Positions 14,726 through 21,787 of a stretch of DNA of 64,000 bases are shown here, piece after piece. Positions within the stretch are counted from its first letter, which is position 1; every line of letters begins with the position of its first letter. A program made the position numbers and the translations under genes. Source of the DNA: Selaginella moellendorffii. Lineage: Eukaryota > Plantae > Lycopodiophyta. A model generated the notes under the pieces. That model saw only the letters and a list, made by a program, of their open reading frames with translations. It had not been told where the DNA came from and made no database searches. The DNA is taken from assembly GCF_000143415.4 (NCBI RefSeq), contig NW_003314282.1:1693374-1757373 (forward strand), written 5' to 3'.

Positions 14726-15130
14726 ATGGAGTCTTCTCTCAAGCTCTTTTCTCTTCTTGCTATTCTTCTTGTGATCTTTCTTGGCTCCTCCAGCTGCGCC
14801 AAGAACGACAACTGCAATGGCTCTGGACTTTGTGGATCTCGCGTCAACCAGGCCGATTGCCGGCGAGCAATCTCTCGCTACACCGACGGAACAATCTACA
14901 ATGGCTTCACTTCTCGTGTTTCTGGCCATTGCACCGCAATTTTCAGGTGCGATGGGAACTATCCATCCGTGAGTGGGGCAGTTCTCAAGCAGCAGTTTCT
15001 CCATGTGTATGACAACCAGCCTTGCCGACTCTGCGGAAGCCATGCATTCGACGGGGGCAATTGCGAGGCCACACTGAATTATTGTGCGAATTGCAGGGAC
15101 TCTGGAAATCCCAACGCCGTGGAGAACTGA
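14726..15130 (+). CDS. Secreted cysteine-rich KP4 killer-toxin-like protein (134 aa), copy A
   Basis: Intronless, with a hydrophobic signal peptide and 10 Cys in the mature part. KP4 family motifs: NCxGSxxC at the N-terminus, SG-initiated helix, CRLCGS and C-terminal TLNY (viral KP4 has NCRGSSQC, CRVCGS, LTVNY). Confidence 0.88.
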   Translation: MESSLKLFSLLAILLVIFLGSSSCAKNDNCNGSGLCGSRVNQADCRRAISRYTDGTIYNGFTSRVSGHCTAIFRCDGNYPSVSGAVLKQQFLHVYDNQPCRLCGSHAFDGGNCEATLNYCANCRDSGNPNAVEN

Positions 15131-15599
15131 AGCTAGGCTTTGGACATCTTCCAAATAAAAGGATTGACAATAATTTGCCGTGCAAGTTTGATATTGTTTG
15201 GTTTTCATAACCCCCCAAATGTTGAATGACAACTTCAAGGTCCATTGAACTTGATTGATCCTCCTTTTGATTTGAAGCAGTGAGTATAGAAGCTTCTTTT
15301 GTGGACAATTCGTTCGCTGCAGAGCCATTAAAGCGATGATCTTCACTGGGAGAAGAGAAAGGTAACAGAGTTAAGTAAAACAGAAGTCAAAGTTTGTCCA
15401 GCTTGACTTTGTAGTCAGTCTTCACTAAATGAAACTTGTTACGTGTTGTACTTGGGTTGACATGCTCCACCAATCAAGCTGGATTTAAAATATTGTTTTG
15501 ATTTATAATTATGTTAAAGGTTGTTGAGAAAAGCCCAACCCTAAAGTAAACTAAATCAAAGAATGTTTTTAGATTTAGTATTTCACAGGAGCATTTGAG

Positions 15600-16070
15600 A
15601 AATAATAAACTTTTGTTTCCTGCACACACAAAAAACAAGATTTAAAGCCTGGATGGTTGACTCCAAGCGCCAGGAAATATGTGAATTTTTGGATTGCAAG
15701 GATGCACTCCATACTGCGGCCACGTTTCTGGAGTAATTCTTACCCTTGGCGCTAACACCCAAGAAGAACCATCCAAAATATCAACAAAACTATCGTCTGG
15801 ATACGTACTGCCATCACGTGACTTGAAAAGGCCTGGACAACCTTTCGGTGGTCAAATCAAGAGCTTGTCCGACCTGTTCATACCAAGAAAGCTTGCTTTC
15901 TTGGTATGATCTTCGATTTTCTTACCTCCACATTGCTCACTGTTTGTGAAGTTTAAGCTTTTCACAGATCGTAAAAGCTTAGATAATTCACGAACGGTGA
16001 GCAGTAAGAGCATCGAAGTACCTGATATACCATGAATGTGAGCGGATAATCGAAGTGCTAGCTAGCCATT
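15600..16070 (-). pseudogene. MAG relic, copy 5
   Basis: ttacccttggc..agaagaaccatccaaaat, caagagcttgtcc and atcgaagtacctgata match MAG exons and introns. Confidence 0.7.
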
Positions 16071-16686
16071 GCGGACAAAGCCGTTTAGTCAAAAAACACG
16101 TTCTAGCATTGGAATACAAAAGAAGAGTGATTTGGAGGCTCTAGAAGAAGAGTTCACGTGATTTTTATTGTTTACTAAAAAAAGTATTTTACACTATTTT
16201 CAAACACATCGACATCACTTAGGGATATATATGGCCTTTGGATGGGCATATGTACTATGCAAAACCACGTCATCAATCAAAGCAATTTTCTCTCTCTCTG
16301 CGAGATGCATGGATTCATTGTGTTTGAGTAAACCTCAAAATCGCTAAGTGTTTGCACTTCATCTCAATTTCCAATCACCTTGTCCTCTTGAATGCTAGAT
16401 GCTGTAGAAGATGAGCGATGTCATTCCAGTTGATTCATCTGCTGCTCCAACGTTAGTATAGTTGTAGCAAGTGAAAGTTGGAGCACTGTGATGCTTTAGG
16501 ACATTCATCCAAATTTAGGCTAGTCCTACCTTCGGAAAACCCAGGTTTGGCATGCCCGAACCACCACAGCAGCCAGAGTGAGTCATGGCGTGTTCGTATC
16601 AAACACGCAATCTTCAAAATACCCCTATATAAACCAGACCATTCCTTTGCAAAAAATCATAAACCTAGCAACAATCTTTCTATCAT

Positions 16687-17091
16687 ATGGAGTCCTCTCT
16701 CAAGTTGTTTTCTCTTCTTGCTACTTTCCTTCTGATCTTTCTTGGCTCCTCCAGCTGCGCCAAGAACGACAACTGCAATGGCTCTGGATTGTGTGGATCT
16801 CGCGTCAACCAGGCCGATTGCCGGCGAGCAATCTCTCGCTACACCGACGGAACAACCTACAATGGCTTCACCTCTCGTGTTTCTGGCCATTGCACCGCAA
16901 TTTTCAGGTGCGATGGCAACTATCCATCCGTGAGTGGGGCAGTTCTCAAGCAGCAGTTTCTCCATGTGTATGACAACCAGCCTTGCCGACTCTGCGGAAG
17001 CCATGCATTTGATGGGGGCAATTGCGAGGCCACACTGAATTATTGTGGGAATTGCAGGGACTCTGGAAATCCCAATGCCGTGAAGAACTGA
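16687..17091 (+). CDS. Secreted KP4 killer-toxin-like protein (134 aa), copy B
   Basis: Near-identical to 14726-15130; many differences are synonymous. Confidence 0.88.
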   Translation: MESSLKLFSLLATFLLIFLGSSSCAKNDNCNGSGLCGSRVNQADCRRAISRYTDGTTYNGFTSRVSGHCTAIFRCDGNYPSVSGAVLKQQFLHVYDNQPCRLCGSHAFDGGNCEATLNYCGNCRDSGNPNAVKN

Positions 17092-20722: not shown

Positions 20723-20864
20723 ACGGGTTCATGGTAGGTGTTGACATGGCATTACACATGGCGAACGCTTGGAGTGGTCATAGCTATATTTCTCACATAC
20801 TTGTTCCGCAGAGAGCATATTATAGCAGGGGTTTGGGACTCGTTGGGTGTCAAGGCTCAGACGT

Positions 20865-21200
20865 TTATGGCTGAAGTTTCAAGGCTCATGAAACTGATGA
20901 AAAATAAACCTCTGTCAAGCACATAGAACATAGTTTTAGAAGCGAGAATTAGAGTCCAAGCGCCAGGAAACAAAGTACTTACAATTGCTTTTGGAGGAGC
21001 AAGGTTTTCTAATCCAGAGAGACTACGGTTGCGTTTCTGGAGGCTTCTAGCCTTAACAAGGATGACATCTCGAGAACTGTGGATCCAAAATATCAAGGAA
21101 AACAACAAAACTTCTTCTTTAGATGAATCACGTAACTCTTATCGTGATCAATAGTCCAAGCAAAGACAGCTCAACGTTTACCTTAGAAAATTCACGAAGC
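20865..21200 (-). pseudogene. MAG relic plus lectin-MAG intergenic sequence, copy 6
   Basis: gctgaagtttcaaggctcatg (as at 8371), tacttacaattgcttttggag (MAG stop region), atccaaaatatcaag and atcacgtaact. Confidence 0.65.
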
Positions 21201-21382
21201 GTTATTTAGACGATAGTTTTGTTGTTTTCCTGTTGATATTTTCCACGGTGACAACCACTTGAGTCTTAATTTGAAATAAGTTCTCGATTAGAAAAATAAA
21301 ATTAAAAGAAGCTTTAAAAATTAAAAGGTCATGTAATACTTTATAAACCAGATGAAGATCGCATTCTTTCTAGCAAATTCCA

Positions 21383-21787
21383 ATGGCGTCTTCTCTCACG
21401 CTGTCTTCTGTCCTTGCTATTCTTCTTGTGATCTTCGTTGGCTCGTCCAGCTCCGCCAAGAACGACAACTGCAATGGCTCTGGATTGTGTGGATCGCAAG
21501 TCAACCAGGCCGATTGCCGGCGAGCAATCTCTCGCTACACCGACGGAACAATCTATAATGGCTTCACTTCTCGTGTATCTGGCCATTGCACCGCAATTTT
21601 CAGGTGCGATGGCAACTATCCATCCGTGAGTGGGGCAGTTCTCAAGCAGCAGTTTCTCCATGTGTATGAAAACCAGCCTTGCCGACTCTGCGGAAGCCAT
21701 GCATTCGATGGGGGTAATTGCGAGGCCACACTGAACTATTGTGGGAATTGCAGGGACTCTGGAAATCCCAACGTTGCGGACATCTGA
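21383..21787 (+). CDS. Secreted KP4 killer-toxin-like protein (134 aa), copy C
   Basis: Same Cys pattern and motifs; slightly more diverged (GSQVNQ, YENQ, NVADI). Confidence 0.88.
   Translation: MASSLTLSSVLAILLVIFVGSSSSAKNDNCNGSGLCGSQVNQADCRRAISRYTDGTIYNGFTSRVSGHCTAIFRCDGNYPSVSGAVLKQQFLHVYENQPCRLCGSHAFDGGNCEATLNYCGNCRDSGNPNVADI

Follow-up and report, generated by a model that had tools for sequence, protein, structure and literature searches.

MU117-family genes with a predicted KP4 fold in the lycophyte Selaginella moellendorffii, of likely fungal origin

KP4 of the Ustilago maydis virus (UmV) is a secreted single-domain protein, an alpha/beta sandwich of about 105-109 residues with ten cysteines, five disulfides in its core and a functional lysine. 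Its gene resides on a double-stranded RNA element in a smut fungus. PMC12382754 divides the proteins of the KP4 structural superfamily into groups; Group 1 comprises UmV KP4, Fusarium KP4-like proteins and moss proteins, all with the Pfam domain PF09044 (Kp4), while a cluster carrying PF15474 (MU117; kcl38-A) is placed in Group 3. The moss genes were 'likely acquired ... from ascomycete fungi', according to PMC11228847, which cites Guan et al. 2023. Here we describe three intact members of the MU117 family, copies A, B and C, in a 64,000-nucleotide stretch of the nuclear genome of the lycophyte Selaginella moellendorffii (contig NW_003314282.1, positions 1,693,374 to 1,757,373 of the forward strand), referred to below as the window. 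The Pfam family, its fold relationship to KP4, the transfer of KP4 genes into mosses and the RefSeq label mug117 are already known. To our knowledge, no function has been assigned to any member of the MU117 family.

Copies A, B and C are uninterrupted open reading frames (ORFs) of 134 codons apiece, and their main features are as follows (positions in the window):

14646-14651, forward strand: copy A TATAAA box, 80 nt upstream of the start codon
14726-15130, forward strand: copy A, intronless 134-aa ORF; codons 1-25 (14726-14800) signal-peptide-like, mature 109 aa at 14801-15127
15154-15159, forward strand: AATAAA poly(A)-signal-like hexamer of copy A, 24 nt past the stop
16628-16633, forward strand: copy B TATAAA box, 59 nt upstream of the start codon
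16687-17091, forward strand: copy B, intronless 134-aa ORF, 96% identity to A
21342-21347, forward strand: copy C TATAAA box, 41 nt upstream of the start codon
21383-21787, forward strand: copy C, intronless 134-aa ORF, 90% identity to A, without Cys24
21810-21815, forward strand: AATAAA hexamer of copy C, 23 nt past the stop

The N-terminus of each product opens with a charged or polar n-region, continues with a hydrophobic core 13 residues long and closes with the c-region GSSS(C/S)-A. Judged by inspection, it is a putative cleavable signal peptide, and all homologues have equivalent N-termini. Past residue 25 every copy has ten cysteines (positions 30, 36, 45, 69, 75, 100, 103, 113, 120 and 123); Cys24, present in A and B only, probably lies outside the mature protein. 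The TATAAA of every copy is embedded in a conserved TATAAACCAGA-type motif. A preliminary description of this DNA had reported three intact intronless 134-aa genes with signal peptides, ten mature cysteines and a conserved TATA box, and each of these points agrees with the features above, the signal peptide by inspection only. It had also noted that A and B differ at many synonymous sites and at only three residues of the mature domain. The codon comparison reproduced that list exactly, with silent differences at L35 (CTT/TTG), T62 (ACT/ACC), G77 (GGG/GGC), F108-D109 (TTC GAC/TTT GAT) and N130 (AAC/AAT), and with I57T, A121G and E133K as the mature-domain replacements.

Pfam assigned A, B and C to MU117 with 72.1, 70.1 and 71.0 bits, respectively (gathering cut-off 30.4 bits), residues 29-123 being aligned with profile positions 2-105 of 105. 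The preliminary description had called the genes KP4 killer-toxin-like and had pointed to the Pfam Kp4 profile as a check. Two results speak against such an assignment: the Kp4 profile (cut-off 27.8 bits) matched copy C at 12 bits (E 0.23) and neither A nor B at E<=1, and a sequence-profile search of the PDB returned no KP4 and no other meaningful match. The weak Kp4 alignment of copy C is colinear (residues 15-105 against profile positions 3-102). Since the Kp4 profile was not matched above its cut-off and the PDB sequence search was empty, the link to KP4 is structural.

Modelled with AlphaFold2 from a 57-sequence alignment, the mature 109 residues reached a predicted local distance difference test score (pLDDT) of 86.9 and a predicted template-modelling score (pTM) of 0.80. 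When this model was searched against the PDB with Foldseek, the sole match at E<=1e-3 was UmV KP4 (1kpt_A; E 9.8e-5, TM 0.62/0.63, 21% identity). Alignment to 48,161 PDB cluster representatives with VIA-align likewise ranked 1kpt first (Z 9.7, root-mean-square deviation (rmsd) 2.6 A, 94 of 105 residues). It was followed by Zymoseptoria tritici Zt-KP4-1 (8acx; Z 7.8, rmsd 2.9 A, 92 residues), the Y3 lectin (6.6), DUF26 domains of PDLP proteins (6.5 for PDLP8, and 5.6), the L. decastes lectin (LDL; 5.6) and ginkbilobin-2 (Gnk2) with bound mannose (5.5). These seven superfamily members span Z 5.5-9.7, and the next, unrelated chain scored 2.8. A first model of the full precursor, built from 11 sequences (pLDDT 71), gave the same set of matches with sub-threshold Foldseek scores. 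All ten cysteine columns are invariant or nearly so in the 57-sequence alignment, which covers plants, Mucoromycota and Ascomycota, and a C-G-S-H-A-F stretch and Lys88 are invariant in the 11-sequence alignment. A Pfam Kp4 match (E<=1e-3) was also present in 9 of the 134 remote hits of the plant/fungal MU117 profile; because these proteins match both profiles, the sequences suggest that the MU117 and Kp4 families may be remotely homologous. Of the label proposed initially, then, the fold stands, the structural match to KP4 having been found with 1kpt at the top of the PDB, and the family does not: "KP4-like" describes the fold correctly but names the wrong Pfam family. That the three copies belong to the MU117/Mug117 family and adopt the KP4 fold is, in our judgement, very probable.

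Comparison with the described systems places the Selaginella proteins close to KP4 in architecture and apart from it in sequence and genetic setting, since KP4 resides on an RNA element and the Selaginella copies are nuclear plant genes. The moss KP4 proteins of Physcomitrium patens (PpKP4-1 and PpKP4-2) offer the nearest parallel, being secreted KP4-fold proteins of a land plant that PMC11228847 and PMC12382754 attribute to a fungal transfer. In contrast, on a comparison by Pfam domain and published grouping, the moss proteins carry PF09044, fall in Group 1 with Fusarium and reportedly have ascomycete donors, whereas the Selaginella proteins are MU117 with Mucoromycota as nearest relatives, and the plant hosts of MU117 are lycophytes and ferns. 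Mug117 of Schizosaccharomyces pombe and other fungal MU117 proteins are in one Pfam family with the Selaginella proteins, whose matches to its profile are full-length, but Mug117 is only ~36% identical to the Selaginella proteins, which are much closer to proteins of Mortierellomycotina (54-61%). Zt-KP4-1, a secreted fungal protein with the second-best fold match, differs in its low identity (9-14%), and it and the ECP2/HCE2 effectors in their HCE2 Pfam domain and placement in structural Group 2. Finally, the DUF26 proteins (PF01657; Gnk2, PDLP5 and PDLP8) share the general fold and are plant secreted or cell-surface cysteine-rich proteins, Gnk2 being an antifungal mannose-binding protein (PDB titles, PMC12382754). 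Their structural scores, however, are clearly below that of KP4, none of the three copies matched the stress-antifungal profile PF01657 at E<=1, and DUF26 is land-plant-wide and expanded in seed plants (PMC6368629), whereas plant MU117 occurs only in ferns and lycophytes.

Purifying selection on the MU117 copies is well supported. Pairwise ratios of non-synonymous to synonymous rates (omega) among A, B and C ran from 0.22 to 0.39 over the entire ORF and from 0.19 to 0.24 over the mature part, at synonymous divergences (dS) of 0.09-0.19. Six distinct coding sequences, those of A, B and C together with three of the other loci, were then pooled: 15 synonymous and 4 non-synonymous changes fell in core codons 26-130 (omega ~0.08, binomial P 3e-7), stronger support for constraint than A and B alone had given. 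In the pooled set, constraint was relaxed in the signal peptide, with 7 synonymous and 10 non-synonymous changes, and in the last four codons, with 1 and 5. Four loci encode an identical protein; with the exception of a single identical pair, they are 4-8 substitutions apart, and every one of these is silent. Between Selaginella and the fern Ceratopteris richardii, across ~400 million years, non-synonymous divergence (dN) was 0.12 with synonymous sites saturated.

The copies form part of an amplified family, as had been proposed. The exact protein of copy A is encoded four times in assembly GCA_000143415.2, on the 2.10-Mb scaffold GL377586.1, of which the window is part, and on GL377596.1; the 90%-identity cluster holds at least nine distinct 134-aa sequences on three scaffolds of S. 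moellendorffii (members include SELMODRAFT_413754, 413755, 416510, 431699, 431701 and 449193). The assembly contains both haplotypes, so the haploid copy number is lower than nine. Three of the entries already bear the RefSeq title "meiotically up-regulated gene 117 protein". Despite low dS, the copies are homologous only from ~100 nt before the ORF to 30-70 nt beyond it. An identical 139-aa MU117 protein is encoded at three loci on Ceratopteris chromosome 21 (CM035426.1, 31.5-32.9 Mb), which are spaced 0.3-1 Mb from one another; the coding sequences of these loci differ by 2-4 nt, and two of the three pairs, the more distant ones, share only ~630 bp around the ORF. Such short shared blocks likely reflect gene conversion within the transcription unit or a small duplication unit, and no poly(A) tract was seen.

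As a whole, the explanation that we favour, and hold to be moderately probable, is that of functional nuclear genes of fungal origin with a secreted action. A, B and C would be members of a locally duplicated S. moellendorffii family, each encoding a predicted signal peptide and a 109-residue ten-cysteine alpha/beta-sandwich domain of MU117/PF15474 within the KP4 superfamily. If UmV KP4, Zt-KP4-1 and Gnk2 are a guide, the mature protein would be secreted to the apoplast, where it may target other cells at their surface, with fungal hyphae the most likely candidates, and inhibit their growth, possibly through disturbed Ca2+ uptake. This antifungal mode of action is advanced tentatively and by analogy, with somewhat less than even confidence. 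It is favoured because the nearest characterised folds are antifungal (UmV KP4, and, per PMC12382754, Zt-KP4-1 and Gnk2) and because KP4 is reported to disturb Ca2+ uptake and also root-hair Ca2+ gradients (the latter in PMC12382754, citing Allen et al. 2008). Two considerations count against it: the mature proteins are near neutral (pI 6.9-8.4), and a carbohydrate-binding or developmental role would be equally compatible, the fold being common to lectins and DUF26.

One such role is an action of the same transferred genes on the plant's own cells, in Ca2+-dependent tip growth or cell development, which we consider rather unlikely. The idea draws on the Ca2+ effects of KP4 in root hairs just mentioned and on the P. 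patens KP4, which reportedly modifies Ca2+ gradients of moss cells (PMC12382754, citing Guan et al. 2023). The very strong long-term constraint is also more readily squared with a conserved target inside the plant's own cells than with an arms race. On the other hand, the moss genes come from a different Pfam family, and tandem amplification, seen in three lineages, is more typical of defence genes. It is also unlikely, to a slightly greater degree, that the proteins are carbohydrate-binding lectins comparable to DUF26/Gnk2, LDL and Y3, which would bind fungal or plant glycans and not ion channels. The matches to Y3, PDLP8, LDL and mannose-bound Gnk2 are clear, and structural kinship between DUF26 and fungal lectins has been described (PMC6368629), but KP4 is clearly the closest fold and the PF01657 profile was not matched. 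Inhibition of hyphal growth thus remains the action that we put forward, at the strength given above.

The relatives of the Selaginella proteins were sought with an exhaustive hidden Markov model (HMM) search across 1.84 billion cluster representatives, the top 25 clusters being checked for names, and with word-based searches. The HMM search returned 138 proteins at E<=1e-3 and, at E<=1e-30, only four clusters: Selaginella, Ceratopteris, Linnemannia and Mortierella alpina. Every named one of the next ~20 clusters looked up was from Ascomycota, including S. pombe Mug117; the Mug117 homologue of S. octosporus was also recovered by the plant/Mucoromycota profile, and PF15474 was carried by 119 of the 134 remote hits. 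Word-based searches found plant relatives in C. richardii (81%), Adiantum capillus-veneris, A. nelumboides and the lycophyte Diphasiastrum complanatum, together with ~40 sequences from Mortierellomycotina, two from Umbelopsis, one from a nematode, a few ENA/JGI sequences and one from an ascomycete at E 1e-9. No close relative was present in any alga, bryophyte or seed plant among the cluster representatives; in the sequences found, plant MU117 is confined to ferns and lycophytes. The family is therefore patchy in plants and broad in fungi (Mucoromycota and many Ascomycota), the pattern expected of a transfer. The homologues of Diphasiastrum and Ceratopteris are intronless and multi-copy and lie on chromosomes of 46 Mb and 178 Mb. 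Of the ENA/JGI relatives, a single 2.7-kb contig was available, and it carries no other genes beside the MU117 one; its coding sequence, GC-rich at third codon positions and flanked by AT-rich DNA, is suggestive of Ceratopteris, though not decisively so.

Two other observations concern the wider family. The nematode sequence, a partial MU117 protein of Mesorhabditis belari (5.96-Mb contig), fell inside the Mucoromycota clade in both trees described below and may represent a separate fungus-to-animal transfer or contamination. Seven long proteins (715-1115 aa) with a C-terminal MU117-like domain suggest that the family also has fusion architectures.

Two maximum-likelihood trees were computed under LG+C20 with Ascomycota as the root. 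Mortierellomycotina and Umbelopsis fell together on one side of a well-supported branch (94/89; 95/95). The ferns, Selaginella and four ENA/JGI sequences formed a clade (99/93; 95/94), with Diphasiastrum beside it. Constraining all plant and plant-like sequences to one clade gave the best topology found, with a likelihood slightly above that of the free search (approximately unbiased (AU) test, p 0.53); a single entry into plants is therefore compatible with the data. We take a fungus-to-plant origin of the plant MU117 genes to be likely, the donor probably being a Mortierella-like fungus and the acquisition an old one. In the favoured explanation a fungus related to Mucoromycota would have been the source of one ancient entry, close to or at the base of the vascular plants, and seed plants would later have lost the family.

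Several results weigh against this account of the origin. The trees rest on only 103-104 alignment columns. The plants are sister to the sampled Mucoromycota and are not nested inside them; because of this, the direction of transfer rests on the fungal breadth of the wider MU117 family and not on the branching order. Monophyly of the lycophytes is disfavoured (AU p 0.016 and 0.050), and with the lycophytes ungrouped, a single vertical history after one transfer is tenable only with extra paralogy and loss. The more economical reading of the Selaginella-fern grouping is ancient paralogy with differential loss, or the shortness of the alignment, and in the favoured explanation ancient paralogy would lie behind it. 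A recent fern-to-Selaginella transfer was considered and rejected, silent sites being at chance level: dS between Selaginella and Ceratopteris was undefined by the Nei-Gojobori method (NG86), and 38 identical codons at identical residues compare with 37.3 expected from a within-amino-acid codon shuffle (P 0.48).

The preliminary description had proposed a fungus- or virus-derived gene. The fungal half is borne out in that the nearest non-plant relatives are fungal, while a viral source is unsupported, a search of a viral structure library with the model having given no match; the phylogeny that it called for likewise puts fungal relatives nearest and the plants beside, not within, Mucoromycota. 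It had also asked whether the transfer was shared with that of moss KP4, and it is not. Since the Selaginella family, MU117, differs from the PF09044 of the moss genes, the plant MU117 genes are an acquisition independent of theirs. Vertical inheritance from a broad plant family, named there as the counter-case, was not seen, only ferns and lycophytes sharing MU117 among plants.

Repeated entry into plants, or an old transfer from one plant to another, with the Diphasiastrum genes separate from those of ferns and Selaginella, is about as improbable as the lectin reading. It would account for Selaginella being 82% identical to Ceratopteris and only 64% to Diphasiastrum, and for Diphasiastrum lying about equally far from ferns (54-66%) and from Mucoromycota (57-61%). 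The disfavoured lycophyte monophyly and, in the second tree, a polytomy of the two plant groups and the fungi point the same way. Against this, one plant clade is the best-scoring topology, the alignment is short, and silent sites at chance level mean that any transfer must be very old.

The reverse route, from early vascular plants into the ancestor of Mortierellomycotina and Umbelopsis, the gene itself being of older fungal or other origin, appears quite improbable. Plants and Mucoromycota are indeed sister groups with neither nested in the other, and transfers from plants to early-diverging fungi, including one from Selaginella, have been reported (PMC11291939). However, the wider MU117 family is fungal, as the remote hits with PF15474 and the ascomycete names show, and in plants only ferns and lycophytes have MU117; transfer in this direction therefore takes two events where one would otherwise do. 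Vertical inheritance of an ancient eukaryotic family with very many losses, or fungal contamination of the assembly, can be dismissed as highly improbable, because beyond the bare presence of MU117 in both kingdoms nothing favours either, whereas the absence of close algal, bryophyte and seed-plant relatives opposes the first, and the second is opposed by the placement of the genes (among PPR, glycosylase and helicase genes in a 2.1-Mb Selaginella scaffold, and in other plants on chromosomes of 46-178 Mb), by a host-like GC content at third codon positions (GC3, 0.57) and by a decayed copy in situ.

Returning to the fungal origin, the fullest form of the proposal combines several steps, and we put it forward as a speculative scenario only. 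In it, a single transfer of a KP4-fold toxin gene from Mucoromycota to a stem vascular plant would have been kept for ~400 million years under strong constraint as a secreted antifungal or tip-growth modulator, repeatedly amplified as a block the size of a transcription unit, and lost in seed plants. Mucoromycota are the group behind the earliest fungal partners of land plants.

In a literature search whose scope did not extend to Ma et al. 2022 (Mol Plant) and Guan et al. 2023 (Plant J), we found no report of MU117 or KP4-fold genes in lycophytes or ferns, or of their Mucoromycota affinity. If the origin proposed here is right, KP4-type transfer from fungi to plants would extend from mosses to vascular plants, in another branch of the superfamily and from another donor group. 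The proteins are small, intronless in their genes and very conserved (82% between Selaginella and the fern despite saturated silent sites), which makes them easy to express and assay, and Ceratopteris provides a transformable host for knock-outs. An antifungal or Ca2+ activity, if confirmed, would be the first function for the MU117/Mug117 family, and either would help to explain how seed-free vascular plants handle fungi.

The surroundings of the copies in the window are those of a plant chromosome, with PPR, methylpurine-DNA-glycosylase (MPG) and DEAD-helicase genes on either side of the MU117 genes. The features that bear on the copies are:

8979-9869, reverse strand: two-exon secreted-protein gene; exon 1 of 131 aa with a signal peptide, exon 2 with a B_lectin match of 20.8 bits
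about 11759-12906, reverse strand: methylpurine-DNA-glycosylase gene with introns (Pur_DNA_glyco, Pfam on single exons)
about 12996-13377, forward strand: decayed fourth MU117 copy (pseudogene), found by translated search across the whole window
17891-20722, forward strand: intronless PPR gene of 943 aa, between copies B and C

Because the copies sit among plant genes in a 2.1-Mb Selaginella scaffold, fungal contamination of the assembly is excluded; the preliminary description had thought it unlikely from the intron-containing plant genes around, and the neighbours are indeed the 943-aa PPR gene and the intron-bearing glycosylase gene. The GC3 of the MU117 copies is that of the host.

The decayed copy retains ~80-86% nucleotide identity to the 5' half and still has the TATAAACCAGA TATA motif, but a 2-nt insertion disrupts its start codon and five internal deletions, each of about 9-26 nt, interrupt it. 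It sits directly downstream of the glycosylase gene, of which fragments 71-84% identical recur at 8019-8711 and 9545-10157. In the two-exon gene at 8979-9869, the bulb-lectin match of exon 2 falls below the B_lectin cut-off of 32.4 bits and exon 1 has no Pfam match; past the pseudogene and ahead of copy A, degenerate pieces of this lectin-like gene recur at 13637-14000. A block of glycosylase, MU117 and lectin sequences thus appears to have been duplicated in tandem here, in an untidy way. Downstream of copy C, a short PPR-like similarity of 71-76% appears again at 22524-23028. Base composition is 41-58% GC over most of the window, with AT-rich blocks (GC 0.27-0.36) at 1-8000 and 50001-54000.

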